The position numbers and the translations under genes were made by a program. From contig CM060733.1 in assembly GCA_030704615.1 (NCBI GenBank), positions 11,036,001-11,100,000 of the forward strand: 64,000 bases of DNA. The letters run 5' to 3'. Shown piece by piece: positions 5,905 through 48,710 of this stretch; positions within the stretch are counted from its first letter, which is position 1; every line of letters starts with the position of its first letter. This stretch comes from Takakia lepidozioides. Taxonomy: Eukaryota > Plantae > Bryophyta. Under the pieces are notes generated by a model that was not told the DNA's origin, did no database searches, and saw only the letters and a list, made by a program, of their open reading frames with translations.

Positions 5905-6480
5905 CCTACACTATGTACAAAGCAGCATTCTATGAACTAAAGCATTATGAAACATGAGCATGCTCTATAATTGTCATGAGTGAAAACCAACAAGTCTGGA
6001 ACACATCTAACTGAAAAATCAAACTTTATGTTCGTGAAATCAAACTTGTGTCATTGTGAATCAGAACAAAGCTGATAACAACATAGTAGATTTCAGGCTG
6101 TAAAATTGCAGAAAATGGATTAAATATAACTAACAAACAAGTCCCGAACTCTCGATTGTGTAGACTTCTAAAACTAAGCATGTATGAATGTCCTAATCAA
6201 TCATTGTGTAAGAGATACTGCCACTACATAATAGATATCAGATTTCTTATCATGCTGTAAGTAGGCATTCCTTTCATTTTACAGATACCGCCACTTATCT
6301 GTAAGTAGGCATTCCTTTCATTGTCATGCCTACACTATGTACAAAACACCGTACTATTAACTGTTGTATGCATGTTGTACAACCATCATGAGTGAAAACC
6401 AACAGGTCTGAAATGCATCTGAATGAAATTCAAACTCTATCATGTTTATGAAACTGAACTTGTATTATTGGGAATTGGAA
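5905..6480 (+). repeat. Diverged ~160-bp direct duplication and a 24-bp direct repeat in an intron of the RPA-like gene
   Basis: GCCTACACTATGTACAAA...CATGAGTGAAAACCAACA at ~5904 and ~6328; CTGTAAGTAGGCATTCCTTTCATT at 6255 and 6299. Confidence 0.75.
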
Positions 6481-21900: not shown

Positions 21901-24900
21901 AAAAGAACCCCTACAATCTCTCAGAAGTAAATCACAGTTTGTGAGAAATGTGAAACCCAAGGTTGGAAGGTCATAGCATTGGCTAGTAAATATGCCCAAG
22001 AATGGAGTGACAAAGTAGTTACCAGGATTACCAGGGTTCATAAAGTTCATTACCACCCACACCACATGTAGGTTTGTTCAGTGCACCCAACAGGAGATGA
22101 AATTCAACTTGTGTCACTATGCATTCTGAGAAAGTCAGTTATGCTAGTGAAAATGTTTTCCTCCTTGCCCCAACATTAGTTGAATAGAGTTTCTATTGGA
22201 AATTATTCAACACTTTAAAATTTTACATCCAAACAGTTTGTCCAGCACTTACATATTGCATTCAAGCACATTTGCCCGTAGTTTTGCAGACACTTGTGCC
22301 AGGGAATGAAAAGGTTGAAGTCGTCTTTCAACAATGGCGTGCCCTCAGAACATTCAACTGGTCAACGGCAAAGAGAAAAGGTCTAAAGCTAACAACAGAG
22401 GATGACAAATACATATCCTTGGAAAAATGAAGAATCTAACAGGACTTGTGGGTGAAAAGACAACTTCAAACTTACATAACAGCAGGAGGAGAGACTGAAA
22501 GCTCGAAGCCCTCGCGCCGCATATTTTCAATAAGAATACCTGCCAAATTCAACAAAACCACCATCCAGTCTCATCCAGTTTCCTTGCTAACCTAACTGCA
22601 GTCTGCACTGCTGCTACTCCCAACCAAGCGATAGCTACAACCCCTGCTTTTTTTTTGGAGCTGCTGTAATGAGCTACATTAGTGACCTCTCCCTCAACCA
22701 CAAAGTGGAGACAAAATTTCTTTTTCTTGTGACCTCAATACCATGAGGACAGAGGAATATAGTATGGTATTTTCAGAGATTGCTTGTCCTTTAAGCTGTA
22801 AGGGCATAAGGTACCTAGCAGCAACATGCATCGGGCACTCAGTTTTTGAGCGAAGTAAAACATATTTCCAGGTTTACTTGTTGGTCTACTGGTTTTTAAG
22901 TACTATGTTACTTCTCTTCCTCTCTCTCTCCCTACAATTGTGTCTCGCAACACAACAAGCAACACTTGAATATCACTTATCACATAGAGGCCTAGAACTG
23001 CAGCGCAGCAATTACACTCATCCTTGCTAGTATGATATCAATGCCATGCGTACAAACAAGGACTCATTCCTCATAGCCAGGCCTCAGCTTTGTGTGAACA
23101 CTGAAAATTTCCAATTTAGCCTCATATTCCATGGCCGAAACCCCATGCCAAGGCTGGAATCCCCCAGCCAACATTTGCAGGGGATGTGGATGAGGTTTCT
23201 CTCTCCCTCTCTGCCCTTTGCACCTCTCATGTATCTATTCAAGTTCTTCACCATCTTTTTTCTTCTTTCTTTTCCCATATCATCTATCAGACAACAATGG
23301 GGTGAAATCAAAGAGTGGCAATCAGAGTACGATGTGCATACCGAGCTGAAGCTCGCCGCGACCTTGCACCTCATAGGCATCCTGACCAGCGGTTGGAACC
23401 AACCCTATTGATAAATTGCTCTCTGCCTCTGCCATCAGCCTTTCCCCTATTTTGGGCCCTGTCAGCTGCCATCACTAATAATCAGTACCTCCATTTACAA
23501 TACATCCACTTTAAAAAGCCAGACCACACTTAACACCCAACACGAGTACACTCACACATTTGCGTCCAGATCCTGCCTACATATAGCCTCCTTGCATTAA
23601 TGCCAAGGAAGCACATAATGAAAAAGCAGCTAGTGTGAGGATCCAACACTGATAATCCAAACAAGACGCAGCGTACGCAAGCGGCCAGAGGGTGCGGAGA
23701 AGGGGTTACCTGGTTACCATCACGGCCTCCCAGTGGAGAATCATTGACACTGAAGGTCATTGATATGGTAGGAGGGTCCATTGCAGCTGCTGGCAGTGCC
23801 TCTGTAACCTGCACACCACAATAGTTTGTAACTCCTCCGTATAGAAGCACACACTAATGAGATTGCCCAATGAAGAGGAGGCTTGCGATCACCCATTACT
23901 CACCTCTACAGCGGCCACTGTATGGCCAATCGACGGCTGTGAGAGGCCTGCCATCGACACAATGTCACCTGCGCCTGCACGATCTACCAGTGCAGTGCTA
24001 GTGCCCTTCTTCTTCATCAGCTTCACAACCTGCTCCAAGCAATCGTCCCCTTAGGCTGACTGGTACTGGACACGTAAAGTTAGGTAAGGTGTGTCCAGAG
24101 AGGCACCCACCTTGCCTTCATCAAAGGGCTCAGAGCCACTTTCACTGCTGCGAAGTCCATGCACCCTGTCCCCGACACGCACTATGCCTGATACAATTCG
24201 CCCTGTCAAGATGCGCCCTAAATATGCATCACGCTCCATCATAGACACCTGTCACATCCAGCCAGCCCAAATTGCAAAGGAATAAAAGTGCAGTCGCAGT
24301 CAGTTCCTTTGTCCCAATTGAGCTTATGCTACACAAAGATGAAGATCCTGCTTAAACTTCACCCAACCACCCAACACGTGCGAGGTACCTTCCTCAGTCC
24401 CCTCTGATAATCAATGGCTGATGAGTAGATTTGTGAAACCCCAGAGATTCATTGACCACTCCCTGCAAGTGTTGGATATGACCTACCCTTAAGGGCCAAG
24501 TCCCCACAGGACACTAACATCAAGAGCTGGTTGTGGGACTCTAGCCGACCAGGGTAAAATTTGTGGCAAAATTTCAATGGCATACAGCTAAAAACAATCC
24601 AATTACAGGGGATGGAGTGTTTGACAAGCTGGTACGAACATTGATTGATTGACATGTTGATTCCAGCACTGCTACTGTAGACCCAATTCGGCCACAGATG
24701 TGACACAACTTACACATTGTGTAGAAAAGAGAGAGAGAATAGTACTCATAAGACGTTGTTTGCCGTAGCCTTGTGGCCATAGACCCCGCACCCAGTTTGG
24801 GCGGAACACAGAGAGAAGAATTGAGAGAGGGAATGTACTCATAAGACGTTCTTTGCCATAGCCTTGTTGCCATTGACCCCGTGCCCAGTTGGAGCGCAAC

Positions 24901-27900
24901 ACAAACGGACAGAAACTACCTTTGTCAGGGGCTGACGCTGGTAGTATGACTTAACTTGGAGCAGACAATTGCTCCCTGTTTACCAAATATCCTCTGGAGA
25001 GATTGTACTCATAAGACGTTGTTTGCCGTAGCCTTGTGGCCATTGACCCCGCGCCCAGTTTGAGCGAGAACAAAAGGGACAGAACCTACCTCTGTCAGGG
25101 GCTGACGTTGGTAGTGTGACTTACCATCATATATAGAATTAATCCGGGTTTTCCAGATATCCTCTAGAAATCCCTTCACACAAGCATCAATCTGCTGTGT
25201 GTGATTTGCCCAAAAACTAGGCCTCAGGAGGGCCTGGGCTTTTGGCTCAGCCTCGAGACTTTCAAAATTGTTAAACAGGGGAACAGGCACAATTCCCTTG
25301 ATAGAGTTGAAGAGAGCGTCTCTCTGGTGAGAGAACCCCGGACAGTGTATCAGAAAGTGAATACTGTCTTCAGATTGCCCACACAGCGGGCAATTGCACT
25401 CTCCCTTTCCTCTCTGCTTCTGTTTGCTGTTCAAAGGTAGGCTTCCTGCCCTGAGTTTAAATTTCAGTCTAGTGCCGAGAGTGGGTAGACCCTTGAGGTC
25501 ATCCAAGATGTCCTCCCCCATGTCACTGACTGGAAACAAGTTCAGGGAAGTTTTCTGCCTAACTTCATTTTCATCAGACAATCTCATGGCAACAGACATG
25601 GCTGAGGACACTACAGCCTCTAAGTCAGATTTATCCAGCAGGGTCAAGGCTTGCGGATCCAGGTCCAGGTCCTTGAGAATCTCTTCTACTCTCTTCTGCC
25701 AGGACTTAGCCTGTTTGACAGGGCGGTCCTGTTTCCAAGATATAGAGTCGATTAACTTAGGATATCTGGTGTTGGGCATATGTTGCAGCTGACCCCACCA
25801 TCTGACCTTGAATTCATCTCGTCGGGAGCTTAAGGACGGAATGCCAAACTCACCCCGAACAGCCACATTGGCTGTTTTGGAGCATGCTGACATACACTCC
25901 TTAAGCACCCCCACTTGAATGGATTCTAGAGACTTAGCCTGGTTGGAGTTATCAACCCATATAGCAGATCCGTACTCCAAGGCAGGTCTAATAACGCGAC
26001 AAAGCATGGTTTTCTTAACCTCAGATTTGACCCCTCTGCAGTGGAAAAATTTAGTGAGCCCCAGAGCTTTGCCCTTGCCAGTTTGAACAACTTTCCGGAT
26101 ATGTGCATCCCAATTACAATTGGAGGAAAACTCAACGCCCAGGTAAGTGTAGGAAGGGAGGACCGGGATCTCTTGGCTACCCCACTGCCACTTAAGATCA
26201 CTTCCTCCCTCTCCTCTGTCGTTGAATGCCACCACTGCACATTTGCTGACATTAGCCTCTAGCCCCCAAAGATCAAAGTATCTATTCGCACAATCAATCA
26301 ACTCCTGGAGATTGGTTGGAGTCTCCACTATGCCTGCGAAGTCATCCGCAAACATAAGGGCTGGTATGGTGGTATCACCCACCCTTAACCCAAATCCCTC
26401 ACTTTCCACATCCTCGAGGAGTTGATTGATGAAAACATTGAAGAGCAGAGGGGAGAGAGTACATCCTTGAGCTACACCTTGGTCTATGTCAAAGAAGTTG
26501 GACTTCTGTCCGTTAACAGTGTCACAGCTTTTGGTGTGAGCATACAAGTTGTGGACAACTCTCCACATCTTTCCCTTGATCCCACAAGACCAGAGGCGGA
26601 ACCATAGGCCATCTCTCCACACTGTGTCATAAGCCTTTTTGACATCCAGGAAAAAAACATAAGTGGGTTTCCCTTCTTTTTTCCTTCCCTGGATAATCTG
26701 GCTTAGAGTGAAGATATGATCCACACAGCCCCTGTTTTGCCGAAAGCCAGCTTGGCCTTCGTGGAAACAACCTCTAGACTCCAGATCAACCTCGAGACGA
26801 GTACTTATAACTCTGCAGAATGTCTTGCCAACAGCATTGAGGAGCGTGATGCCACGGTAGTTCCCCGGTTCTTCTCTGTCACCCTTCTTGTATAGATTGA
26901 CAATGACCCCCTGTCGCCAGCGAAAGGGGATCATTTCAGTCGTCCAGATAAGGCCTCTATCATGGGATCGCCACCGTGCTTGATAAGCTCGTTGACAATA
27001 CCATCAGGTCCACCAGCTTTATATCCATTTAAATGTTCAATTGCTTCCACAATCTCAGAAGAACTAATGGGAGCATTATAAGCCATTGAAATATTCTCCA
27101 GTTCATCAGGGCTGTTTTGAATCATAGGAACAGTTTTTCCAACTGTGTCCCTCCATTCAGCAGAAGACCCCTCACTGTTAGACCTAGAAGTTCTGCTAAG
27201 GATACTGTAGTGAGTTTCAAAGGTTTTGACAATGTCAACCGATGAAGTCACCACTGCACCTTTAGTAGTCTTCAGCGCTTGTACTTGCTGACCGTTTTTC
27301 GGCTTGTACAAACGTTGAAGGGCCAACCAGAATTTCTTGTCATTACCACCATGGTGGTTTGAGTTTATTTCACTGTATAACTTGTCCCAGTATAATTTCT
27401 TCTGAGACCTAACAAGCTGATTGATATCTTTACGGAGCTGGTAGTACCTCGCCCACAATTCTCTGTTGGTTTCCAAATTGCAGCACTCTTTATAGAGGGC
27501 TCGTCTCTCAGCTATCTTGAGTTTAATCTCATTGGTCCACCAATTAACTGCTCTACCGCAGACAATTAGTTTCCTCCCAATGATCTTGTCAGCCACGGAG
27601 GAAACGAAACTCTCCCAAGAGTCTACTGCTCTTTCGACTTCATTTCTTGTGTTAACAGAGCGTGACTGAAGTTCTTGGAGCGATTGGACAAAATGAGGGA
27701 GAGCCTCTTGCAAGGCCTGGACGTACTCAGCCTTGACCTCCTCATTGTGGAATTTTTCTATGCACCACTTCCGAATCGAACGTTTCACAGATCTCTTGGT
27801 GGTGGGAAAACACCTTTTGATCTCAGTCCAAACCAGGAAGTGGTCAGAGGTACCAATATCAGTTCTGTCGATCAACACATTGGCACACTGGGGGAACAAA

Positions 27901-30900
27901 ATTTTGTCCATTATGATATAGTCCACAATGGAACGTTCCCCAGTTTGGGATTTCTCACGAGTCCACTGCACTTGGTCACCTCTTGTCCTGTTATTCAAGG
28001 TCAAAAGCTGAAGCTCTTCTAGACAGTTAATTAACCGTCTGCCATTAGAATTCAGCTCATCCTCACCAAAAGGTCCAATGATATCGTCCTGATGGATCCC
28101 TTTGCCCACCCGGGCATTGAAGTCCCCCAATAGTATCACCTGACCTTTGGCAAGGAACGAAGCACAGTCCAGCTTTACATCTTCGAAGGCTTTGTCTGCG
28201 TCAGCACTAAGGGTCCCCTCTGTGGGCATGTAAACACAACCCACAAAGAGGTCCTTTGTACTCATGCTGCCCTTCAGATTCAGTTTTAGCCAGATACTAT
28301 GCTCGTACCTCAAACCCTTGTTGATAATTTCACAATTGTCAAACAAGAAATCACGGACAAAGAATCCAACCCCTTTTTGACCGCGTTTGGCAGAGGCTGC
28401 CTTAAGAGTACACATCTTACCTGCCCATTTATAACCATTGACATCTCCAACCAGTTTATCCGACGTTTCCCATGTTTCTTGCCCAGCACAGATATGAATA
28501 TCATTAGTCCGAAGAACTTGTCCCACTTCGAGTTGTTTCCTTTGGTTGGTCAACCCTGAGAAGTTGAAGTGGCCAGCCGCAAGCCAGCCCTTTGCATGTG
28601 AATTGTTTGTCGTCTAGGTAGCTTGTGATTGCTCCTGGACGGCCAACCGTTCTGCAAAGGGGGGACAGTTACCCCATGTGTAGATTTTGCTCGTCTTGTG
28701 TAAACTTTGAGAATTGGTAAACCATTCAGGGTACCAAATCTTTCAGTTACACGACGCACAGGCTCCGCACACATAGGGGCAGATTGTCCGTCAGACTGCT
28801 TGGGGACAATTACCCCGTGTATAGATTTTGCTCGTCTTGTGTAGACTTTGAGGATTGGTAAACCATTTAGAGTACCAAATCCTTCAGTTACACGACGTTC
28901 AGGCTCTGCACACTTCGGGACAGATTATCCATCTGACGGCTTGGGGACAATTACCCCGTGTATAGAATTTGTTCGTCTTGTGTAAACCTTGAGGATTGGT
29001 AAACCATTCAGAGTATCCTCTAGAGAGAGAGAGAGAAAGAGAGAGAGAGAGCAGTTACCAGCATGCTAAAGGGGGAGTGAAGATCGCCAACAGGAGGGGG
29101 CACATGCTGCACAATGGCATCCATGAGTGGTGCCATACTGCAGTCCTCACCCCCACCTTTGGTGAAGGTGCGTGAGACCCACCCCTCCTTGGCTGATGCA
29201 TACAACACTGGGAATTCCAGTTGCTCATCTGCAGAAATTGCCTCCTTGTCACACACCATTGTACACCTGCTTGTCCACTTCAAACTCAAGGCGAAACCGG
29301 CCAAGGAAATGAAAAATGGGGAGGAGACAAGGATGCACAGTTATCCCACATAAAAAGAGACAATTTGGGTTTTAGGTTAACTACAGACAAAAGAGGGATG
29401 GCTACAAGAAAAATGAGCAAGGACAACAGCTATTCCCCAATGTTAGGATCATGTTAGCCACACAAAAGAATTTGAAGGGAAGAATACCTGTTGCTCCCAG
29501 ATTTGCAAAAAGATCAAAAACTAGACTTTCCACCTCCCCACACCTTTGTTCTGTGACTGCAAGAGAAGTCAATTGTTGTTAGCAAGAGCACAGTCCCCTC
29601 TCTCCACATTAGGACAATCAGAGATGCCTTGCGGCATTTACATGTAGCTATTCCAATTATGGAATCATTCGAGGCAGAATCGTCGTTTTACAGTTGTGGA
29701 GGCTGATTATTGGGGGGCCCAATCTTCTGTTCTCTGTCCTCTCTCTTTGTCCTCTAAGCTCTTTTTGAGCTTTCTGTGGATGTTAGAAGGTTCCTTTCTT
29801 TCTCTCTGCTTCAAACCGAGGCCATCGTCCAGTTTGCAATCTTTCTTACAAGCTTACATGCCCTTCCACCCAAAGGGTTCCCAGGCCCTCACAACATCTA
29901 TCAGGCTCAAAGCTCCTGGCATGCCAGCTTTTTTTAGCACAGTAGACTCTGTTGCCTCCCTACTGCCACAAAATATGGAGGGGGTGGAAATTGAGTCCAA
30001 GTAGGACTGCAATGGATGCATCAGACGAGAATTTATGTAACTTCCTGTCAGCTCGACATGGAACTGACCAATCTTTACAACAAAACTGCACTTTGGAGAT
30101 TCAATTCTCTATTCCGTGATACCTAATCTCTCACCTGCACGAGGCATTGACTCTCAGACAATCCCTTGAGCAATAGTTGCTATTGGGCTGCTTGTGGAAG
30201 GCCCTTCTTTCTTGTTCCTTGCTCTCTCTCTCTCTCTCTCTTTTGGATATTTTCATATAGCTACACCTCATATAGCTTTGAAATTAAAAAAGGAGAACCC
30301 ATGCGTTACCATAGCGGCCGTAACTTGAACAACAGAATGACAAGTTTATGTACCAGCAGGGCGGTCAACCTTGTTGAGAAGCAGGATGGGCCGGAGGCCA
30401 AGATTCAGAGCCTTGGCCACAACAAACTTGGTCTGCGCTAGTGGCCCTTCCCCAGCATCCACCACCAATACTGTCCCCTCCACCATGCCAACCACTCTCT
30501 CCACCTGCCCTCAAATATCCAGCACATGTCCGTGTTGATTTCTCTCATGAAAAAGACGGTCCATGTCTGTCTCTCTATCTCTCCTTATACATGCAACTTG
30601 AACCACATCATAGGTTGGAATGAGAACAGAGGACACAACTTTAAATTGGTGATTTCAAACTAGGTGGGATTTGCTTATTGACCTCTCTCTCTCTCTCTTT
30701 TATCTTCCCGCTCAAACTGGGCGCAGGGTCAATGGCCACAAGGCTACGGCAAACAACGTCTTATGAGTACGATCTCTCTCCTTTATCTTGGGTAGAATGT
30801 TTCAGGTGGAATAAAGTAAGTTTTTCCTTTAAATGTCCTAAAGATGACAAATAGACACTTGCTGCAAACTCATTCCTTGGCCAGGGCCTTCTTGGATTAT

Positions 30901-32920
30901 TGAATGTGCTGGTTTGAATTTAGGGTTTCAGAACCCTTACCCTGCAATTTAGTACTCATTTACAAGAGTTGTCTGAGTACAAATGGCAGCTACCTGAAAC
31001 TACAGGCAAAGTGTCGGGCACACCGCTCACCGAGCTTTGCCTTCAAGAGATTTTCAATAGGGCTGCGACCAGCAAGGTTTAAGCGCAACCTTGCCTTGTA
31101 TTGGTCGAGCTCCCTATGCAGTTATAGGAAGCCATGGCTCATTTGTGGACACAAACAGGAAGTTACACTCAGCCCTTACACTCAGCCCTTCTTTGCAATT
31201 ACTTCCTGTTGCGTGAACGTATATGCGCAACATCATAGACTGGTCTGCCTCAAACTTTCAAGGTTCTGTGCAATGTCACGCCTTTACTACTTCTCTTGCA
31301 ATCTTTCACTAGCTTAGATCTGCATGTTGGACAGTGATAGCAACCGTGAAGACCTGCTACTCATCTCGCGCATCCTCACTAACACGCATGCTGTTGGATG
31401 TGGTGGTTTATGCGAGGGGCGCAGGTGAGGGTCCTTCACCCTTCATGGGTCTCTAAGCTATATGTGTAAGTTTTGCTACAGAGCACATTGAATAGATGAT
31501 GCAAATCACCTATTGCTTGAGGCAGCCACTGCCTAGGATAAATAGTACAACGCTTGACGACAGCCTCATGTGTCTGTGAGGGAATATTTTACGGAAGTAA
31601 TTTACCCTTGGATCTGATACAAGAGGGTTCGGAAGACACGCTTGACTTGGGTCAATCTCAGTTTACAGCCCAGCTGAGTGGTTTCATTCTGAATACTGTG
31701 TTTGTTTTGTTTTAAGACATGGTGGTACATCCCATTCGGGCTATGGTGGAAGACTTGGATTTGTCTCAGTTTTGAGACAAATCAGAGAATGATTTTCAGA
31801 GAAGTATTTGTGTTGACACTACTTTGATGAAAATGAATTATCCTCATAGAGAAGTACTATGCTCAGACATTTACTGTGGGCATAGATCTCTAAGGTTTTA
31901 AGCAAGGACAAAACAAGCCCTATCTCTCTCCACATATATGCGCCTTGCACGAGATCACACTAGTTAGCAGGTAGGATTTGCAAGATTTTGATTGGGTAGG
32001 GCCCAGGGAAAACATAAAGGAAAGGTGCTTGTACCTCTCCACCAAAGTCAGCATGACCAGGTGTATCCACTACATTTAGCTCCACTCCCTTCCAAGAAAC
32101 GGATGTATACTGCATGCATGAATTTGTGTCAAAACTCACTCTCCCACCCTACCTTCTATCACTTGTGCAAGTCTCTCTTCCTCTGCATACATGCACAAAT
32201 TTGAACCAAGGCTGTGAAAGCGAAGATTCCAATTTTGCATCTGCTTATCAAAGTACTACAAACACAAACAACAAAGCATTTGTCTCGGAGTTTAGAGCCT
32301 TTATAAGCTCAGAGAACACCGACATTTAAAGAATTGCATAGTCCACTCAGGAAAAGATAAGAAATGGAGACAGAACATACAGCTATCACCATGAATATTG
32401 ACAAGACTAACAGGCACAATGTATGCTGGCACACGTTTTTTCAGCTGAAATTTTCTGTGAATTTCACATACACCTATTTAATCTCATCTACTCTAAACCC
32501 TCCACAGCTGAATTTGAATCCTGAATACAATAAAACCCATCGTAATCCTCCATTCTCGGTACACCTCAAAAGCTGAATTTGTGGAAATGACAAGTATGTG
32601 ACCTTAGAAGCAATAGTGATGCCACGCTCGCGCTCCAAAGTGATGGAGTCCATAGCACGATCGCGAGACACTGCGGCACCACATTGCTTCAGAATCCGGT
32701 CTAGCAGCGTTGTTTTTCCATGATCAACGTGCGCTATAATGGCCACATTCCGAATAGCGGACGGAGCCACTACACTGTCGACCAGGGAAGAGTCCACCTC
32801 CGGTGCCACCACCGACAACCCTCTCTCTGCCCCCCACCAGGATCTGCTCCGCAACTGAGAGCTTCCATGGACAAGCCGGCGGGCGGCCATCCAGGCATGC
32901 CTCCCAGGAGGCCCAGGCAT
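18906..32920 (-). CDS. TypA: TypA/BipA translational GTPase, mitochondrial-type, ~19 exons
   Basis: Presequence-like N-terminus; [29 protein letters not shown] (exon 32603-32920); [13 protein letters not shown]; LLNKVDRP; [12 protein letters not shown]; [12 protein letters not shown]; LEPIEEV; GLVGYRSVF; [15 protein letters not shown]; [14 protein letters not shown]...KKED*; exons GT-AG bounded. Confidence 0.95.
24735..24810 (-). mobile_element. ~70-nt 3'-terminal copy of the TC-targeting LINE (third element in the stack)
   Basis: CCGCCCAAACTGGGTGCGGGGTCTATGGCCACAAGGCTACGGCAAACAACGTCTTATGAGTAC followed by a (TC)n tail. Confidence 0.9.
24830..24982 (-). mobile_element. Older 5'-truncated (~150-nt) copy of the same LINE (second element in the stack)
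   Basis: Diverged match to the LINE C-terminus EDIW...YQRQPLT...KNVL*. Confidence 0.88.
25001..29014 (-). mobile_element. Near-full-length LINE (APE-RT-Cys/His ORF; RTEX/L2-like) in a TypA intron, 5'-truncated
   Basis: APE: [23 protein letters not shown]: [35 protein letters not shown]-terminal [16 protein letters not shown]. Frameshifts at ~28565 and ~26950 (19-nt deletion). TSD TATCCTCT(G/A)GAGAGA; (GA)n tract at 29022-29051. Confidence 0.95.
28660..29014 (-). repeat. 141-bp (47-codon) tandem repeat, ~2.5 copies, upstream of the LINE APE domain
   Basis: ACCCC(A/G)TG at 28671, 28812 and 28953; translates as repeated [14 protein letters not shown]. Confidence 0.9.
30707..30773 (+). mobile_element. 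~67-nt 3'-terminal LINE copy inserted at a (CT)n tract with a 16-bp TSD
   Basis: CTCTCTC(T/C)TTTATCTT at 30691-30706 and 30774-30789 flanks CCCGCTCAAACTGGGCG...GTCTTATGAGTACGAT. Confidence 0.92.
30920..31690 (+). ncRNA. Candidate large structured RNA, antisense within TypA intron 2; family not identified
   Basis: More than 10 nested complementary stems; G-U pairs favour the + strand; GNRA loops (TGAT-GCAA-ATCA, TTAC-GGAA-GTAA). Confidence 0.45.
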
Positions 32921-33362
32921 TGTGTGCAACTGCACACATCTACCAGCGCCTCGGAAGCAAGGCCATGGATCAGATCCGACCCTTGTTGCTTCGTTGCTTC
33001 CCCTGTGCAGACAGGAAGAAGAGAGAGGTCGTCTCTCTCGTCTTCCGCACATTTTAGGGTTCAGGGTTTTAGTAGAAGTGATAAAACTCCTCACGAGGCC
33101 GTTTGCACGTTTGCACCCATCGATGTAACGTGAGTTAATTAATTAGTCGATGGTCTGCATGCCAAGTGGGGTCCCTTTGGTTGCATTTGTGGAGTAGTTT
33201 GGATAAACTTGCGGGTACTTTATGTTTTGGATTTATCCCATATCGTTTGCGCTGCACGTTCACACAAATTTCCCGCGTATTTCTTCCCTTCCTCTTCGTC
33301 TTCGTCTTCCTCTCTTTGTTGTGTGTGATTTGCAATGTCTCCGAGGAAACGGAAGGCCGGCG
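32921..33362. promoter_or_regulatory. Compact bidirectional promoter/5'UTR region shared by TypA and SNI1
   Basis: Divergent ATGs ~440 bp apart; telobox-like TTTTAGGGTTCAGGGTTTT at 33052; CT-rich leader toward SNI1. Confidence 0.6.
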
Positions 33363-34368
33363 ATGGAGCCTCTTCCCATAAGCGGCCGCCCCTGCCACCG
33401 GCCGCTACTAGAGTATGCTGCATCCCTTCTCGCTGTTATTAATTACTGATCTTTGTAGAGGAATTTCAAAAGCAGAGTGATCTTATCGCTTACTGGTTAC
33501 GGTTTGATTCTTAAGGGGGAGATTTTGAAGTCGCAGCTTAGGAATTGAGAGTGGAATTGGATGTGCATCTGCGAGTGTTGAACGTTTGAACGTTTGGAAT
33601 TGACGAAGGTTTAGGTGTTTATCTCGTGTAGTGTATTGCTTGTATGCTTTACAATTGTGCTGGGGGCGTGGTGGGTGGGTTGATTTGTTTGGTGAATGCA
33701 GCGCAACACTCGAAACGCAGGCCGCCAGCTCGAGGCTACGGTACTTACCCTGTCTTGTCGATAGTTCCCGCATATAGAAGCATGAATTGTGCTGCGTGTT
33801 TGATTGCTGCTGGTGTTGATGACGATGGCGCTTGTTGTAGACTGTCGTGGAGAGGAAGGACGAGATCCTCGTGTCACAACAGGAAATTTCGGGCAGCGCA
33901 CGATTGAGACGGAAGGAAGGGGAGGCGGGCACCCAGCGCAAGCGGATAGATCTATCGTTAGTTCATAATTTGCTAGCCATTGCTGATACTCACGGTGTCC
34001 AGGAGGCTGCTCATGTTGATGCCGACCGTATCCCTCCTGCTATTGAATATTGCATTCTACGAGGTCGGCTGTTTAGAGGCGACCTCGCGATAATTTTAAG
34101 AGGCCCGCCAAGTGTTCCTTCATTGTCAATTTGTCTGCCCATCATTTGCTTTTCTCTTTCTCCTTCACTTTCCATGCGAAATTAGAACCTCCAACTGTGT
34201 GTACATGTGCGAGAGAGAATGTACTCATGGGACGTAGGCCCCAATCCCAGTTGTGTGGAAACTTGGGGAGTAGACACTACCTTTGTGAGAGGCTCACTCC
34301 AATAGTGTGACTTACCTTTGTATAAACAGTTAGTTTGGGCTTTCCAGATAGTTTTCAAGAAATTTGGT

Positions 34369-34401
<33 letters not shown>

Positions 34402-39077: not shown

Positions 39078-39277
39078 TTTAGAGATTAGCTTGTGGGAAT
39101 TTGTGAAGACAGTTTTTGAGAGAGTTTCTGAGAGTCTCTGTAGAACGTCATGACTACCACTGTACTTCAAAGACTCGAATCTTCATGTACATTCATACAA
39201 CAAAGCAGAATGAGCATGCCGGGATTGGTGGTGTTGTCTGCAGACTTGGCAGCCTGTACAAAAAGTACCCTCCAGCT

Positions 39278-41830
39278 CTAATCAACCATTTTGGCTACAG
39301 TGGGTGGATTTGATTCCACTACGGAAGAGAAGGCCGAAACAGCCCATGCTTTTGAGGGGCTGTTCCTGACCACAAAGTACATTGGTGAATGACCTCGTGT
39401 CAGGGAAGCAGCTAGCTTTTCTTTCACCCAAGGAGGATTCCACCAATCCCCAAAGGACCTCTTGTGCACTCTGCTTATGTCTGTAGTCTGGTGATCTCTG
39501 ATTGGTCTGTGAAAACATGCAGCCGAGCGGCCATGGTTGGCTCCCAAGTACCTGGTAAACACCAGGAGAAACCCTTGGGCAATTCATCTTTACTGCCTGC
39601 TTAGTAAGAACACGTAAGTTATGATACTGACAGGAAGAGCCACTTTTGCAGAACAGGCAAACTCCTTAAAATCATACCTGAAGAAAGGGCACCTTGCCAA
39701 GACAGTTGTCCCGGCATTGTGAAGAATCTCAAGTGAATCTTTGCAGTGCTGTTCCATGCTCCATGATTGACCTTTGCGCAGAAACTCAACAGCATCAGAA
39801 CTGTGAGAGGTCCTGAAAAGGTGGATTGCAAGTGGAGCTTTCAACAACATGCATGCAAGTCACTCTGTTCACCTTTCGGTCTCCATTGTCCCACCATAGA
39901 CTCGGGTTTGAAAAATATTCTTTCCAAAGCTTTCCATCATTTCTGTTTTTGATTTTCGGATATTTACCTTAAACCCAACTGTGTCACATGCATCTTGGTA
40001 CATGTTCACCAACGACTCACAAATGAGCAAGAAAATGAGCAAGACCCTCACGAGTCCTGCGTCTCACACATCCATGTAGTTGAGTGGGGCAGTGGCTTCA
40101 GTACTCTGCATTTCAAAATACAGATCAAAGGCGAATTCGTCGACAACCTGCCACCTCTCCTAAAACTCATCAAATCCACCAGCTAGGTCATCTACATCTA
40201 TTGGCCCTGTAACCAAGCTCCTCAACCTGAGCTGCCTTCACATCAATTTTGCCATTGGCACCTTCCCCCCATGTGATCAAAGAGCCTGCAAACAGGGCAG
40301 CTGCATCACCAATCTTTCTTACAAGTCAAAACAGTCAGCCCGCTTTGTCACCACTGCGTCACACCCCAACCCAACCAAGCCCATGTCTTTCGAGTCTTTG
40401 TGCCCTGGATTTTGGCACAGCTCCTTGTCTTTCACATATTGTTCATCAAAAGAGCTACCTGGCACCTGCAGACCATAGCGGCCAGTGGCATTTACAAATT
40501 TCAAGCCACATTCCATATTTGTCACATTCTGCAGATCATGGCCCTCAATTCCACCACTCTCTTTTGCAAATGTACAACATCCCAGAAAATTTTGTCTGAA
40601 GCCTTTACTATGTCCATTCACTGTACTGTAAGAGAGACAGTTCTCTATGGCACTGCCTGCTGCTTCAGACAGAAGCCTGCTTGCAGCACAATTGGGAAAA
40701 GGAAAATCTTTGTCACTGGGAAGGTTCCAGCTCCTTGTTGTGACTGGTGCTGAGAGCTCTGCCCCAACGGGAGGCACATGAACACCAAGAGCTTGAAAAC
40801 ATAGAGAATGAAACAAACTTAATGTGGACGGACCAACCAAGTTGGATGGTCCCGTCCATCCAACATCCAGTATAAAGAGCGAGCACGTCCTTAGTATCGT
40901 CATAACTCTTATGCTCTTCCAAAATGGACTTGAGCATTGCTCACAAGGACGTGCTTGTTGTTGCATTGAGAAGGGCGGGGAGTTGGTTGCACAGTTTGAT
41001 GTCGTGCTAAAGAGGTTTCGGATGTGCTTGCATCTATGGATCATTGAAGAATGCCTCCGAGGTATTGGCATCTTACCAAGTTGCATCAAAGGGTTTGGAG
41101 GTGGAGGCATCTTCGCACGTTCTAGAGAGCCTCATCAGGTCCCTGGTTCCGCTGTGAAGAATGATCTTGGCCACAAGGGACGGGTGGGGTGCTTGAACAC
41201 CAACCGCGACCCCTAGAAGGGCTTCGCGAAAAAACAAAAACAAAATAACGGTCCTTTTGGACCCACCCACGCCGGTTGGGGAAAAGTTTAGGGCTTGAAA
41301 AATGGTCTCTATCAAGCCCTATCAGTGGCAAATTTGATCAAAATGGCGATGATTAATACTATAGCTACAGAGTCCAAAAAAAGTGGACTGGCTACCGTAT
41401 TCCAAGCCAAGCCACCAGACTGAGCACCAAGAGAATAGGACTTCAAAGTTCCTAGGTCTTTGTGGGATGCTCCCATCGTGCTTGCCATAGCTTTACAGGG
41501 TATCAAGTATAGCCAGGCCACACATGACGGATGCAAAGCCTGAACACAGTTCCCATAACGCAGGACCTTGGTGCGTAGCGGTGTCAGGCCGTCCCTAAAC
41601 GCCTGGCGGGGCGTCCCCTCGACAAGTAGTTTTCTAACGCAAGAAAACCTTGTGGAGATGGAAGTGCGTTCCTCGAATGCTGCAACCTGTAGTAGGGCGC
41701 CACCAATGTGGGAAGGCGCCACGTGAGCAGGAAAAGGAGGAAATAAGGTTGCACTAACCTCACCGTCTGCCTTGTTGGATCTTAGCAACCAATCCCTGCT
41801 GTTGAAAATGGGTCCCACCAAGGAAGGATG
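39278..41830 (-). pseudogene. Long decayed coding region of unknown product
   Basis: ORFs 40319-41110, 39869-40051, 39590-39850 and 39278-39562 share one frame, separated mostly by stops. Confidence 0.4.
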
Positions 41831-42762
41831 GGGCTTGTGTGGCCGCTCCCTTGCAACGTTGGGAAGACGCCGTTCTTCGACGTGCGTCCTGCCAACGGAG
41901 GAAAATGGTATGTGTGCCTGGCCATCAACCCCTCATCGTTGGCAGTCGGTGAATAAAACCAAACTCTGGTGTCCGCTTCAAAAAAAAGTGAGATGACAGA
42001 TGTAGATGAGCAGGTAGACATGTACTTAGCAGAATAGAAGCTACAATCCAACATTCCTGGTTCCAAGCTATGCATGCATCCAATCAGCCTCTGGTATTGT
42101 GTGGTATCTGTGATCTGAAACTTTATCATCAAGATGTAAATGAAGGTGTCAAGGACTAGATTAGACACTCTCGGCTATCCCTGTGGGTTAGACTAATGAT
42201 AAACCAGTCAGCGGAATACTTGACCAATCAGGATCATTTTTCATGAATGGACCTCTACGTTGTAGATGTGCACTGTACAATACAATACAATGGCCACCCT
42301 ATTGATTCTTTGATATTCTAGTTGGTATGCTTGCTGTTCAGTGTTCATATCACTTTTAATTATAGAAGGGTGTTTTGGGAGAGAAGACTACATAAGAGCC
42401 ACTGTACCCAACTGCCACCCTTATGGGGGGGGAGGAAGGATTCATCTGTTTTGGGGACATATTGGACATGTTTCATAAGTACTTATGATAAAACATTGGG
42501 TCTGCAACCACACATTGACACAGAAGGAAGGAATTTGTGACTGTGGGTGCAGCACGGAATGTGTTAAGTTAGAACGTTAGAAGTTAGAACCAACACAGCT
42601 TTGAAATTCAGTTACTGGAGAGCATGAAAACTCTGCTTCAGTTTGTAGGCTGCCCAGAGCAGGGGAAGAAGGTTGAAGACTGTAAAGGGGGCGAGCGTGC
42701 CACCTACGTTCGCTTCTGTGTTAAGTTGTTGAAGTAGGGGTGGAGGGCGGAAGGAAGAGAAG

Positions 42763-43578
42763 ATGGGCTCCAGTCAAGATCAACACAGTGTTAGCTTCTT
42801 GAGAAGCTCCAAGTCGAAGCGCAAGGAGAAAGAGCAGAAGAAGCTGCAGTTCGGTACAGGTGTAGGCTGGGGGAAGGGGAAAGTCGAGCCGGTTCCCACA
42901 GTGATGCCGATCGTATCTGTATCTCACGATCGCACCAAGGATATTTTTTCTCGGAAGGAGAACCGAGAGAGTCCGGATGGTGAACATGGGCACAGAGGGT
43001 GCTGTCGTGGGCAATGGGTTTCAATACTCGATGTGGCTGAACAGCTGAGTAAGCCTCAAGGGCTGCCTGGGGGACGGCTGTTTCCTATTCCCAAGAGGAC
43101 CCCCAATCTGACACTCACAGTGGACTCTGCTATGGGAATTGTGGAGAAGCTGAGTAAGCCTGAAGGGCTGCCTGGGGGAGGGTTATTTCCTCTTCCCAAG
43201 AGCACTCCCAACCTGAAGAACCTGCCACCCTCACTGGGGTCTGCTATGGGAATTGTGGAGAAGCTGCAGGCAAGTGGCCTCATTACTGACATTCAATCCA
43301 ACCAGGTAGCATTTGCACGAAACTCTGAAAGTAGTTGGCGGAGAAAGATAGAGGCAGAGGATGTGGTCATTGCCCGCGTTGGACGAACGTGTTATTTGTG
43401 TCGTACTCTTGAGCACCGCTCCCACGTAATAGGAAATTCCCCGGAGCATGCAAACTTAGCCCGACATTGCAACAAACTTTCGCAGAATTTAACTAGAATG
43501 GAATCGGGTGTATATGTCAAGGCTGTCACTGTTGATTTCAGTACTCCAGTCCCTACTCTGCCATCAAGAGAGAGATAG
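42763..43578 (+). CDS. 271-aa ORF of unknown function with internal peptide repeats; possibly exon 1 of a decayed spliced gene extending to ~45210
   Basis: Open frame containing (SAMGIVEK)LSKPxGLPGGxLFPxPKxTPNL about 2.5 times; downstream exon-like pieces at 44170-45210, one with an in-frame stop. Confidence 0.4.
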   Translation: MGSSQDQHSVSFLRSSKSKRKEKEQKKLQFGTGVGWGKGKVEPVPTVMPIVSVSHDRTKDIFSRKENRESPDGEHGHRGCCRGQWVSILDVAEQLSKPQGLPGGRLFPIPKRTPNLTLTVDSAMGIVEKLSKPEGLPGGGLFPLPKSTPNLKNLPPSLGSAMGIVEKLQASGLITDIQSNQVAFARNSESSWRRKIEAEDVVIARVGRTCYLCRTLEHRSHVIGNSPEHANLARHCNKLSQNLTRMESGVYVKAVTVDFSTPVPTLPSRER

Positions 43579-44079
43579 AATGAGTAAATCAAAGCCAAAA
43601 TAGCTGATGGGGCAAGAATGCCATAACAAAGAAAAAACTAGCAATCCAGGGTTAAATCCCTGCACGTGACGGAACCCCAAGTTTAGCTGCCAAGGAACTC
43701 TAATGCCTCTCCCACGTATGAGCAGTCTCTCATCATACAGAGAGAGAAGGAAAGAACGGATCATAATCCACAAGAAGGATGAAAGAAACATAATACACAG
43801 GAAGAAGGGAAGCAAACTTGCTCACTTGAGAACAGTCTGCTAGGTAAATCAGCATGGATCCCCCTGCAACCAACCCCTCAAATACAGTGCTACTCTTTGG
43901 GTCAAGATAACGTAGGAAGGTAACGAAGCTGTGTTCCTCCCTCTTTCACGACTCTCCCTTAACCCTCTCCCAACATTGTTAGGCATCACTATCTCTGTCA
44001 GATCTTGGTATTTGGGTTTTGGAAATCTTTTGGAAGATTCCTGGTCACATAGAAAGTTCAGGCCTATTTTGGATGTAGG

Positions 44080-44083
<4 letters not shown>

Positions 44084-44132
<49 letters not shown>
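44084..44132 (+). repeat. (CT)n microsatellite, preceded by a possible diverged LINE 3' end
   Basis: ~24 CT units; the upstream peptide LLEDSWSHRK resembles FLEDIWKTR. Confidence 0.8.
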
Positions 44133-44136
<4 letters not shown>

Positions 44137-45282
44137 GCATGGATGGGCACTAAGACATTCTATGGTTGCAGGCTATTCGCGCAGAGAGTTTTGACCCTGA
44201 GGTAGCACTGAAGCTATTACAGACACAGCACAGAGAAACTCTAAGTGAGGCCTCGCTAAATCACCAAAGCTCAGCTTTGGAAATAACCAGGCAAGCTGGT
44301 GGTGATCATGTTCATTCTCATAGAGGGATGGCTCCTGCATGCAGATTAAAAACTCCTGAGTTCTATTCGACAGCACAGCTGTTGGCAAAAGTGCAGGAGG
44401 TGCACAAAGAACCATTTGATGTGCCAAGAGCTTTGCAGGCACACTAATCTTTGAGCCATTCTTTTCTCCCTTTCTATGCTGAAGTGCAGAAACCTCTAAG
44501 GATTATAATCTTTTCTGTTCTAGATGGTGTTACTTTTTGACTTGCCACTGAACTTGGTACAACTATACCCACTAAACAAGGACTGAGTTTTTACTAATCT
44601 GTGCGAGGAGGGATTAATGACTCCATATCTAGATGCCTGTAAGTTGGTAGATGCACTGCTATTTGAGATACAACAAGAAGATACCAAAGGGTCTAAGGCA
44701 ACAGCACCCTACATTTTAGACAGAAAACATCTCACTGTATTAGGATTATCCAGTGCACTTAAGAGGACTACAAGATTCTTCTCCTTACTGGCACTTTACA
44801 TACAGGTGGCAAATGAGACAGGAATGGCACTCGATAAAGAAAAGGAGTCTGAACTTGAAAAGGTTCTGGCAGGTAACAGTAGTCATATTGTTGGCCCCTT
44901 TCTGAGGAGTGAAGGATACAGGAGAAGACGTGTCCGTCATGAGTATTCAAACCTCAGCAAAATCATTGAGCCTCCAGACTCTGTTATGGCACAATTTGCT
45001 CCCAGGTTGGACTCTTATGGCATACTATTATTGCTCAGTAACTCAGTAATATTACTCAATAACTCAGTGTCATGGAGCCTTACCATGTAAGTTGACCTTT
45101 GGTTTGTTTCAGGAGAGTGGGAAACCAGGTAGATGCACACTGTGTGGCGGTGCTCCCCAAGCAGCCCTCAGTGTCAGACCTTTGGGTGTCATCCAATCAT
45201 TGCCCACAGGTGTGTCTCTTTCTCTCTCGGTTCTACTGTGTTGTTCTCCTATATCACTTCAATCCTTTGAGCCTCCCATGGA

Positions 45283-45327
<45 letters not shown>

Positions 45328-45329
<2 letters not shown>

Positions 45330-48300
45330 AGGACAAGAGGTGACCAAGTGCAGTGGACTCGTGAGAAACCCCAAACTGGGGAACGTTCCATTGTGGACTA
45401 CATCATAATGGACAAAATTTTGTTCCCCCAGTGTGCCAATGTGTTGATCGACAGAACTGATATTGGTACCTCTGACCACTTCCTGGTTTGGACTGAGATC
45501 AAAAGGTGTTTTCCCACCACCAAGAGATCTGTGAAACGTTCGATTCGGAAGTGGCGCATAGAAAAACTCCACAATGAGGAGGTCAAGGCTGAGTACGTCC
45601 AGGCCTTGCAAGGGGCTCTCCCTCATTTTGTCCAATCGCTCCAAGAACTTCAGTCACGCTCTGTTAACGCAAGAAATGAAGTCGAAAGAGCAGTGGACTC
45701 TTGGGAGAGTTTCGTTTCCTCCGTGGCTGACAAGATCATTGGGAGGAAACTAATTGTCTGCGGTAGAGCAGTTAATTGGTGGACCAATGAGATTAAACTC
45801 AAGATAGCTGAGAGACGAGCCCTCTATAAAGAGTGCTGCAATTTGGAAACCAACAGAGAATTGTGGGCGAGGTACTACCAGCTCCGTAAAGATATCAATC
45901 AGCTTGTTAGGTCTCAGAAGAAATTATACTGGGACAAGTTATACAGTGAAATAAACTCAAACCACCATGGTGGTAATGACAAGAAATTCTGGTTGGCCCT
46001 TCAACGTTTGTACAAGCCGAAAAACGGTCAGCAAGTACAAGCGCTGAAGACTACTAAAGGTGCAGTGGTGACTTCATCGGTTGACATTGTCAAAACCTTT
46101 GAAACTCACTACAGTATCCTTGGCAGAACTTCTAGGTCTAACAGTGAGGGGTCTTCTGCTGAATGGAGGGACACAGTTGGAAAAACTGTTCCTATGGTTC
46201 AAAACAGCCCTGATGAACTGGAGTATATTTCAATGGCTTATAATGCTCCCATTAGTTCTTCTGAGATTGTGGAAGCAATTGAACATTTAAATGGATATAA
46301 AGCTGGTGGACCTGATGGTATTGTCAACGAGCTTATCAAGCACGGTGACGATCCCATGATAGAGGCCCTAGTTCTCCTCTTTAACCTTATCTGGAAGACT
46401 GAAATGATCCCCTTTCGCTGGCGACAGGGGGTCATTATCAATCTATACAAGAAGGGTGACAGAGAAGAACCGGGGAACTACCGTGGCATCACGCTCCTCA
46501 ATGCTGTTGGCAAGACATTCTGCAGAGTTATAAGTACTCGTCTCGAGGTTGATCTGGAGTCTAGAGGTTGTTTCCACGAAGGCCAAGCTGGCTTTCGGCG
46601 AAACAGGGGCTGTGTGGATCATATCTTCACTCTAAGCCAGATTATCCAGGGAAGGAAAAAAGAAGGGAAACCCACTTATGTCTTTTCCTGGATGTCAAAA
46701 AGGCTTATGACACTGTGGAGAGATGGCCTATGGTTCCGCCTCTGGTCTTGTGGGATCAAGGGAAAGATGTGGAGAGTTGTCCACAACTTGTATGCTCACA
46801 CCAAAAGCTGTGTCACTGTTAACGGACAGAAGTCCAACTTCTTTGACATAGACCAAGGTGTAGCTCAAGGATGTACTCTCTCCCCTCTGCTCTTCAATGT
46901 TTTCATCAATCAACTCCTCGAGGATGTGGAAAGTGAGGGATTTGGGTTAAGGGTGGGTGATACCACCATACCAGCCCTTATGTTTGCGGATGACTTCGCA
47001 GGCATAGGGGAGACTCCAACCAATCTCCAGGAGTTGATTGATTGCGCGAAGAGATACTTTGATCTTTGGGGGCTAGAGGCTAATGTCAGCAAATGTGCAG
47101 TGGTAGCATTCAACGACAGAGGAGAGGGAGGAAGTGATCTTAAGTGGCAGTGGGGTAGCCAAGAGATCCCGGTCCTCCCTTCCTACACTTACCTGGGCGT
47201 TGAGTTCTCCTCCAATTGTAATTGGGATGCACATATCCGGAAAGTTGTTCAAACTGGCAAGGGCAAAGCTCTGGGGCTCACTAAATTTTTCCACTGCAGA
47301 GGGGTCAACTCTGAGGTTAAGAAAACCATGCTTTGTCGCGTTATTAGACCTGCCTTGGAGTACGGATCTGCTATATGGGTTGATAACTCCAACCAGGCTA
47401 AGTCTCTAGAATCCATTCAAGTGGGGTGCTTAAGGAGTGTATGTCAGCATGCTCCAAAACAGCCAATGTGGCTGTTCGGGGTGAGTTTGGCATTCCGTCC
47501 TCAAGCTCCCGACGAGATGAATTCAAGGTCAGATGGTGGGGTCAGCTGCAACATATGCCCAACACCAGATATCCTAAGTTAATCGACTCTATATCTTGGA
47601 AACAGGACCGCCCTGTCAAACAGGCTAAGTCCTGGCAGAAGAGAGTAGAAGAGATCCTCAAGGACCTGGACCTGGATCCGCAAGTCTTGACCCTGCTGGA
47701 TAAATCTGACTTAGAGGCTGTAGTGTCCTCAGCCATGTCTGTTGCCATGAGATTGTCTGATGAAAATGAAGTTAGGCAGAAAACTTCCCTGAACTTGTTT
47801 CCAGTCTGTGACGTGGGGGAGGACATCTTGGATGACCTCAAGGGTCTACCCACTCTCGGCACTAGACTGAAATTTAAACTCAGGGCAGGAAGCCTACCTT
47901 TGAACAGCAAACAGAAGCAGAGAGGAAAGGGAGAGTGCAATTGCCCGTTGTGTGGGCAATCTGAAGACAGTATTCATTTTCTGATACACTGTCCGGGGTT
48001 CTCTCACCAAAGAGACGCTCTCTTCAAATCTATTAAGGGAATTGTGCCTGTACCCCTGTTTACCAACTTTGAAAGTCTCGAGGCTGAGCCAAAAGCCCAG
48101 GCCCTCCTGAGGCCTAGTTTTTGGGCAAATCACACACAGCAGATTGATGCTTGTGTGAAGGGATTTCTAGAGGATATCTGGAAAACCCGGATTAATTCTT
48201 TATATGGAGGTAAGTCTTACTACCAACGTCAGCCCCTGACAGAGGTAGGTTCTGTCCCTTTTGTTCCCGCTCAAACTGGGCGCGGGGTCAATGGCCACAA

Positions 48301-48332
48301 GGCTACGGCAAACAACGTCTTATGAGTGCAAT
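45328..48332 (+). mobile_element. Second long, 5'-truncated copy of the TC-targeting LINE, nearly identical to 25001-29014
   Basis: Same APE-C/RT/Cys-His protein with different small frameshifts (~46685, ~46712, ~47424); 13-bp TSD CTCTCTCAGCATG; preceded by (CT)n at 45285-45321. Confidence 0.95.
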
Positions 48333-48349
48333 CTCTCTCAGCATGTAGG

Positions 48350-48415
48350 CTCCGTCCAAACTGGGCGGGGTGTCTATGGCTACAAGGCTATGGCAAGCAA
48401 AGTCGTGTGAGTACT
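48350..48415 (+). mobile_element. Older ~65-nt 3'-terminal LINE copy stacked behind the long copy
   Basis: TCCGTCCAAACTGGGCGGGG...GTGTGAGTAC flanked by TCTCT(C/G)AGCATGTAGGCT. Confidence 0.82.
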
Positions 48416-48710
48416 TTCTCTGAGCATGTAGGCTACAGCATACAAAGCCGAATACAGTCTCTCTGAGCATTTATCAAAGTGCTCAGTGGCAGAGTCAGTT
48501 ATGAAAATCATGAGTGCAACTTTTAGTCAAATTTTGTGTGTCAAAAAATGCGGCCTCTCATAGTCTTGGCAGCGGTGATGTACCGTGCATCCAAACTCAG
48601 CGTTAATATCATCGTAATCACCAGAGGGCCCAAAATAATAGTGTTAAGAGGCAGCAAGGGTAGAAGCTTCAAGAACAAACACTTGGGCCCTGCCCTTTTA
48701 GGAGGAGAGC

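Follow-up and report, generated by a model that had tools for sequence, protein, structure and literature searches.

Introduction

Insertion into microsatellites is known from several families of long interspersed nuclear elements (LINEs) in animals. In two reports that cite Kojima and Fujiwara 2004 (PMC3812793, PMC4494074), the Kibi elements (KibiDr1/2, KibiFr1 and KibiTn1) appear as (TC)n-specific LINEs of teleost fish belonging to the Tx1 group of the L1 clade, and Tx1 is described as an animal clade. Further microsatellite LINEs, likewise all from animals, include Koshi (TTC), crocodilian Tx1 elements (TTCC/TTTC), Waldo (ACAY), Mino (AC), Dong (TAA) and Togen (TG) (PMC3812793, PMC4494074, PMC4640811). 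How such elements choose their target, whether through the specificity of the endonuclease (EN) or through pairing of the RNA tail, has been stated to be poorly understood (PMC3812793). Here we describe a LINE family from the land plant Takakia lepidozioides, found in a stretch of 64,000 nt (GCA_030704615.1, CM060733.1:11,036,001-11,100,000, forward strand) that is called the window below and to which coordinates are relative. The family has probably been active until recently, has reached a very high copy number and belongs to the RTE-X clade; its insertion would proceed by target-primed reverse transcription, with a preference for long (TC)n.(GA)n microsatellites. A preliminary description of the same DNA had compared the family with animal LINEs, naming Kibi on TC and Waldo on AC; the assignment of Kibi to TC stands, whereas Waldo targets ACAY and the AC targeter is Mino (PMC3812793).

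Within the RTE-X clade, the autonomous families RTEX-1 and RTEX-2 of Ectocarpus are annotated as LINE/RTE-X with a single open reading frame (ORF) for EN and reverse transcriptase (RT), a (C)n 3' end and a "C-rich" target-site duplication (TSD), and the non-autonomous RTEX-N1 of the same genus "can be present in tandem" (PMC12477816). Tails such as (CA)n and (CAA)n occur in green-algal RTEX families (PMC3747384, Table 3), and LINE/RTE-X sequences are annotated near Marchantia centromeres (bioRxiv 10.1101/827881). In the literature searched, which did not extend to Repbase Reports (prior curation there is possible), no (TC)n-targeting LINE was found for land plants and no microsatellite targeting for RTE-X, in agreement with the preliminary description, which named no land-plant precedent.

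Copies in the window and their target tracts

The window was searched with the full-length 4-kb minus-strand copy (blastn) and with its two ORF pieces (tblastn). These searches found exactly seven copies of the family at four loci on both strands, and no others (Table 1), while a 23-mer from the 3' end of the element occurs five times in the window with at most three mismatches and zero times in shuffled sequences. The seven places are the same as those of the preliminary description, which had reported seven copies at four loci in both orientations, each 3' of a (TC)n tract and ending in TC; all seven indeed terminate in ...GAGTAC(A/T)(A/T)TCTC. Each copy (7/7) lies directly downstream of a (TC)n tract of at least eight units on its own sense strand, and the TC on its 3' side amounts to 2.5-5 units in every case. 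The orientation relative to the TC strand is the same in 7/7 copies, on both genomic strands.

The association is with long tracts. Outside the LINE bodies, short TC runs (5-9 nt) number 258 in the window; seven runs measure 10-15 nt (two compose the array-A tract, and a third is the tail of copy A1) and five measure at least 16 nt. When the interrupted tract of array A is counted as one, four of about six long tracts are occupied, and the corresponding figure for the short runs is 0/258. With position and orientation drawn at random, a copy would come to lie no more than 10 bp past a long tract with p ~5e-4 per locus, which puts four independent loci far beyond chance. Together with the EN and RT domains identified below, these counts uphold the earlier suggestion of an apurinic/apyrimidinic endonuclease (APE)-type LINE family with a preference for (TC)n. 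Two long (CT)n tracts on the plus strand, 44084-44133 (25 units) and 30222-30241 (10 units), are free of LINE copies.

The truncation points of the shorter copies recur at two distances from the 3' end, ~72-90 nt (A1, B and D-old) and ~165 nt (A2 and C), both next to pyrimidine-rich internal stretches. Joining of the 5' end by microhomology may account for this recurrence. With regard to neighboring genes, a TypA/BipA-like exon (29052-29260, minus strand) ends at a GT splice donor 7 nt ahead of the array-A (TC)n tract, so that the full-length LINE, in the same orientation as the gene, stands right at the beginning of a TypA intron, and copy B is antisense to the TypA gene.

Table 1. Features of the LINE family, its target tracts and its duplications (window coordinates, except in the last row, where positions are those of the loci named)
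Feature	Position	Strand	Remarks
A1, short copy	24739-24825	-	array A; abuts tail of A2
A2, older 5'-truncated copy	24831-24998	-	array A; 82% identical to full-length copy
Full-length copy, ~4.0 kb	24996-29013	-	array A
Copy B, 75 nt	30707-30781	+	antisense to TypA gene
Copy C, old	34211-34365	-	74% identical
D-young, 5'-truncated at full-length position 1022	45328-48339	+	97.8% identical to full-length copy
D-old, older short copy	48354-48422	+	84% identical
Target tract of array A, (TC)n, 15+14 nt with one interruption	29022-29051	-	7 nt inside TypA intron
Target tract of copy B, (CT)8, 16 nt	30683-30698	+	
Target tract of copy C, (TC)11.5, 23 nt	34378-34400	-	
Target tract of array D, (TC)18, 36 nt	45286-45321	+	
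TSD of full-length copy	29014-29021 and 24988-24995	-	..CTCT+AGAGGATA and ..CTCC+AGAGGATA
TSD of copy B	30699-30706 and 30782-30789 (TTTATCTT)	+	CTCTCTC(T/C)+TTTATCTT
TSD of D-young	45322-45327 and 48340-48345 (AGCATG)	+	CTCTCTC+AGCATG
TSD of D-old	48340-48351 and 48423-48434	+	AGCATGTAGGCT; TC units precede both
5' region, 2.5 copies of 141-bp (47-codon) tandem repeat	28661-29015	-	open in frame joining endonuclease
AP-endonuclease domain	27831-28535	-	Pfam Exo_endo_phos, Exo_endo_phos_2; motifs QETW, GDFN, SDH present
Reverse transcriptase domain	26131-26886	-	RVT_1, E=4e-34; FADD box
CCHC zinc knuckle, CX2CX7HX4C	25342-25398	-	weak zf-RVT match
Conserved 3' hairpin, GUC.AUGGC-loop-GCUA.GGC	25025-25047	-	within last ORF codons
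3' terminus	24996-25014	-	AUGAGUAC box with TGA stop (25009-25011), then AATCTCTCC
Duplications of (TTA)n relatives	L002 2829-2843/5299-5313; L078 2970-2980; L079 2010-2024		

Target-site duplications and order of insertion

Clear TSDs can be read in four copies (full-length, B, D-young and D-old), and each consists of a few TC units plus unique bases, as the preliminary description had reported. The unique part measures 6 nt in D-young, 8 nt in the full-length copy and in B, and 12 nt in D-old, and the TC at the 3' junctions 5-9 nt. In all four copies, the element is separated from the long tract by the unique half of the 5' duplication. This geometry implies that the tract predates the insertion and is a product neither of integration nor of tail slippage. 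Template jumping onto the tail of another RNA was considered as a source of the upstream TC and was rejected on the same ground, namely that the unique half of the duplication separates the tract from the element.

Two of the duplications are nested and give the order in which copies arrived. The AGCATG of D-young is identical to the first six bases of the 5' duplication of D-old (AGCATGTAGGCT), which means that D-young inserted later and landed between the tract and D-old. In array A, the 3' AGAGGATA of the full-length copy constitutes the first eight bases of A2, where it aligns with the element interior (25158-25165); the duplication was therefore drawn from the 5' end of A2, and the full-length copy inserted after A2, which was displaced downstream. 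In both arrays the youngest copy adjoins the tract, and the nested duplications at two tracts show that one boundary was hit repeatedly.

Structure of the element

Once two indels in the full-length copy are allowed for, a single ORF holds the endonuclease, the RT and the CCHC knuckle, with intact catalytic motifs in both enzymatic domains. Compared with most genomic copies, as seen in read contigs, one base is missing from the full-length copy behind 28566 and 19 are missing behind 26951, and it is because of these indels that this copy is listed as ORF pieces. D-young has one frame break near 47402-47579. The statement that a consensus of the two young copies repairs every frameshift does not fully hold, because the 28566 indel lies in a part that D-young lacks, which leaves this break uncovered by the two window copies.

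No separate ORF1 or second ORF was found, and the 460 nt upstream of the endonuclease are open in its frame. Allowing for the 1-nt indel at 28566, the 141-bp repeats stay open into the endonuclease frame (28553-29015, minus strand), and judging from this reading frame the supposed 5' untranslated region (UTR) may encode a repeated N-terminal peptide. At the other end, ...TTATGAGTACAATCTC contains the TGA stop, which leaves only ~8 nt to the end of the element; the tail is TCTC and poly(A) is absent. Copy C has a 24-nt gap (34211-34290, minus strand) exactly over the conserved 3' hairpin, representing either a later deletion or a hairpin-less subfamily.

Clade assignment

The best database proteins, which come from ENA eukaryote assemblies and from Ectocarpus, are only 42-57% identical to the Takakia protein. 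Over 93% of the query, the Ectocarpus protein P0014 shows 42% identity (E=2e-144), and its C-terminal ~190 residues match the RTEX-1_Ec32 consensus (PMC12477816 supplement 2) almost residue for residue. Sequence comparison places the LINE family in the RTE-X clade, with the link running through this one curated reference. Typical RTE-X traits are also present, namely a single EN-RT ORF, the lack of a separate ORF1, and a tail made of a simple repeat in place of poly(A).

Membership in Kibi/Tx1 was considered and rejected, since the closest curated relative is RTE-X, the RT does not lean towards L1, and there is no separate ORF1. In a search of PDB sequences with the RT, human L1 ORF2p (E=2e-20) scored no better than R2 proteins (E=9e-22); the same search with the endonuclease domain gave no match at E<=1, and the ESM Atlas returned generic RT clusters only, which are uninformative on clade. 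The one Kibi-like trait that does hold is insertion in (TC)n (7/7 copies), and because the lineage is unrelated to Kibi/Tx1, this choice of target would be convergent.

3' ends of related elements

The contigs of ten relatives were compared at their 3' ends. Eight of the ten share with the Takakia family one strikingly conserved terminus, which consists of GGUC(A/G)AUGG, a loop of 3-4 nt, GCUA(C/U)GG, 6-15 nt, (A/U)UGAGUA containing the stop codon, and a short simple repeat. The shared motif was not seen in L082 (35% identical) or in Chlorella L083, both of which are more remote. Tails vary among these elements, being (TTA)3-6 in six loci from ENA assemblies, ATTATT in L001, C-rich in Ectocarpus and (TC)n in the Takakia family. 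Across nine 3' ends from eight loci, the covariation score of the hairpin is 0.269 versus 0.153 in shuffles, with 0/500 shuffles reaching the observed value, and 94% of cells pair as compared with at most 55% when the partners are slid. One pair of the hairpin occurs as CG three times, GC twice, AU twice and UG once; pairing persists because of compensatory changes in variable codons.

Three of the (TTA)n-tailed relatives have TSDs of 11-15 bp that open with one TTA (TTA+ACCAACTAGAAT, TATTA+AGCTTT and TTA+CTAGTCTCCTCT), and no microsatellite lies upstream of these three insertions. Such duplications suggest an ancestral habit of the clade, in which strand cleavage is staggered by ~11-15 bp and the primer end pairs with one tail unit. 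In the Ectocarpus locus (L077), two C-rich-tailed RTEX 3' ends (2978-3072 and 6010-6152) are each followed by the same ~70 nt (GATGTTTGCCAT...), which is present three times. This repeat may be a tandem or target-reuse pattern like that of the Takakia arrays.

Genome-wide read data

Logan contigs of four sequencing runs were aligned on positions 24900-30850 (5,951 letters). Run X1, the probable source run, yielded 48,875 contig pieces, of which 16,721 are at least 99% alike, and its depth at the 3' end of the element is about ten times that at the 5' end. The number of pieces, their likeness and the slope in depth indicate a family that is very abundant, young and mostly 5'-truncated; the reads show that the genome carries tens of thousands of pieces of it. 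Many joints run from an internal position of the element to 24997/24998 with GAGA, GAG or GGAGAGAT in between, and are head-to-tail chains linked by TC. Among the loose ends that pass the tail at 24997, 144 contigs from X1 have the consensus (GA)8 and 12 contigs from X5 have (GA)5, and the loose ends at 25000 (163 contigs) and 25004 (122 contigs) show only A/G-rich sequence on the plus strand, which is T/C-rich in the sense of the element.

Run X6, which is labeled as another organism (organism B), contains seven small LINE contigs on 25073-27537, five of them at least 99% identical and two 95-99% identical, and contains none of the unique flanks. These contigs could derive from a close relative, from contamination or from transfer. 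A metagenome scan with a 16-mer from the 3' end gave 73 matches, all attributable to chance, and none was extended by blastn. A protein search with the last 130 residues, in a collection that does not include contigs of the species, gave no scoring match.

Proposed mechanism and alternative explanations

Integration may be pictured as target-primed reverse transcription in which the ribonucleoprotein (RNP) of the element would nick the GA strand 1-3 repeat units inside the 3' boundary of the tract, as read on the TC strand. The freed ...GAGA-3' would then pair with the ...AAUCUC-3' end of the RNA and prime cDNA synthesis, the RT presumably gripping the RNA via the adjacent hairpin. Cleavage of the TC strand ~11-15 bp downstream, usually in unique DNA, would produce a TSD of a few TC units and 6-12 unique bases, and the unique parts of the observed duplications (6, 8, 8 and 12 nt) agree with such a stagger once the TC at the 3' junctions (5-9 nt) is added. 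Each new copy would slot between the tract and older copies, building a head-to-tail stack with the youngest member next to the tract, and the long tract, left intact upstream, would be available for further hits.

The main competitor of this model is microhomology of the tail alone, whereby nicks of low specificity are extended only if the 3' end can pair with the UC tail, and long tracts are hit because they offer many registers. The (TTA)n relatives speak for this explanation, as their duplications need a single TTA and no upstream microsatellite, so that 1-2 units suffice in the clade; some genome-wide junction classes with merely T/C-rich flanks do so as well. However, the 258 short TC runs of the window offer equal pairing of 4-6 nt and none is used, as opposed to four of about six long tracts, and by a rough count of registers a single event would reach the edge of a mid-length or long tract with a chance of ~0.12, which makes ~2e-4 for four loci. 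Pairing alone would also predict insertions throughout the tracts, whereas 7/7 window copies have at most five TC units on the 3' side. We consider this explanation unlikely, though it is the strongest of the alternatives. Since short runs pair equally well yet are unused, pairing alone appears insufficient, and we infer an added preference of the EN or RNP for long GA/TC duplex; the data favor endonuclease specificity and tail pairing acting together.

A different possibility is that the LINE creates the microsatellites, its TC tail expanding by slippage and later copies coming to sit near such tails. RTE-type LINEs are known to seed microsatellite families, and tail slippage has been proposed in Lepidoptera (PMC2887409); moreover, the read ends show many copies with long TC past the tail, and tail-to-head chains exist. 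Nevertheless, what precedes the four tracts of the window, which stand 5' of the copies, is unique DNA and not a LINE 3' end, the tracts lie outside the duplications, the two unoccupied long tracts carry no copy at all, and the tails of the window copies have just 2.5-5 units, which together make this origin very improbable. Passive co-location, in which LINEs and TC tracts both gather in tolerant regions such as introns and no targeting occurs, would be compatible with the position of copies in or near introns (e.g., the TypA intron). It is the least credible of the explanations, given that copies abut tracts to the base pair in a constant orientation (7/7), that the TSDs include the tract edge, and that the edge was hit again.

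Several observations count against integration targeted to the edges of long tracts. Copy-by-copy tabulation covers one 64-kb window, in which A1, A2 and C have no readable duplication, and the specificity proposed for the endonuclease is deduced from statistics on four loci. About one third of the 3' loose ends listed in the read data run into long TC (at least eight further units); the rule of insertion at the edge only is thus not absolute, and either some nicks fall away from the edge or tails can reach considerable length. The 3'-edge position given in the preliminary description accordingly describes 7/7 window copies, but genome-wide a large class continues into at least eight TC units. 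Other junction classes have flanks that are only T/C-rich, with no clear TC repeat. Shared target and orientation at the junctions in the window exceed random expectation by far (p ~5e-4 per locus), and the genome-wide read ends are consistent with this for a large class of copies. Finally, among the four runs the unique flanks are covered by X1 alone, no joint among those listed skips the element, and no empty allele was seen in these runs.

When these points are set against the structural evidence, target-primed integration with a preference for long (TC)n.(GA)n remains the explanation that we prefer. A more specific proposition is that an RTE-X LINE of land plants evolved, independently of the Kibi elements of fish, an RNP that recognizes the boundaries of long (TC)n.(GA)n tracts and reuses them, resulting in polarized, chronological stacks of 3' ends, with the specificity of EN or RNP superimposed on ancestral pairing of tail and primer. 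For this proposition, we judge the chances to be about even.

Comparison with known systems

If true, this interpretation describes a second, independent origin of (TC)n targeting, in another LINE clade and another kingdom, with very young copies in huge numbers, and the ordered stacks at the tracts would amount to a natural record of insertions. The close relatives with (TTA)n or C-rich tails, which lack microsatellite targeting, offer a ready-made comparison by which the two mechanisms of target choice could be told apart. The family also matters for genome annotation, as it sits in introns and splits TC microsatellites, and its arrays can be mistaken for satellites or CRISPR-like arrays.

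Among the described systems, the 3' end of the Takakia LINE can be compared with those of eel UnaL2 and zebrafish ZfL2 (L2 clade, stringent type), for which PMC3747384 reports a hairpin near the 3' end followed by a short repeat tail that is thought to pair or slip on the primer. In the Takakia element, by contrast, the hairpin is located inside the coding sequence, the 3' UTR is only ~8 nt, and the clade is a different one. The Ectocarpus RTEX elements resemble the Takakia LINE in the single EN-RT ORF, the C-terminal peptide, the 3' hairpin, the UGAGUA box, the simple-repeat tail and TSDs rich in the letters of the tail. What sets the Takakia LINE apart is its (TC)n tail and the long pre-existing dinucleotide microsatellite upstream of the duplication, whereas the (TTA)n-tailed relatives compared here have no microsatellite in that position. 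Koshi, the crocodilian Tx1 elements, Waldo, Mino, Dong and Togen share insertion into simple repeats but differ in clade (Tx1, R1, R4 or NeSL), in repeat unit and in their animal hosts, and Togen uses a restriction-like endonuclease. The closest parallel in target choice is Kibi, which is likewise of the APE type and has copies in (TC)n in one orientation. Kibi is an animal element of the Tx1/L1 lineage, while the Takakia LINE is a land-plant element assigned by its sequence to RTE-X, with a single EN-RT ORF, and its copies in the window stand at the 3' boundary of the tract with duplications that are partly unique.

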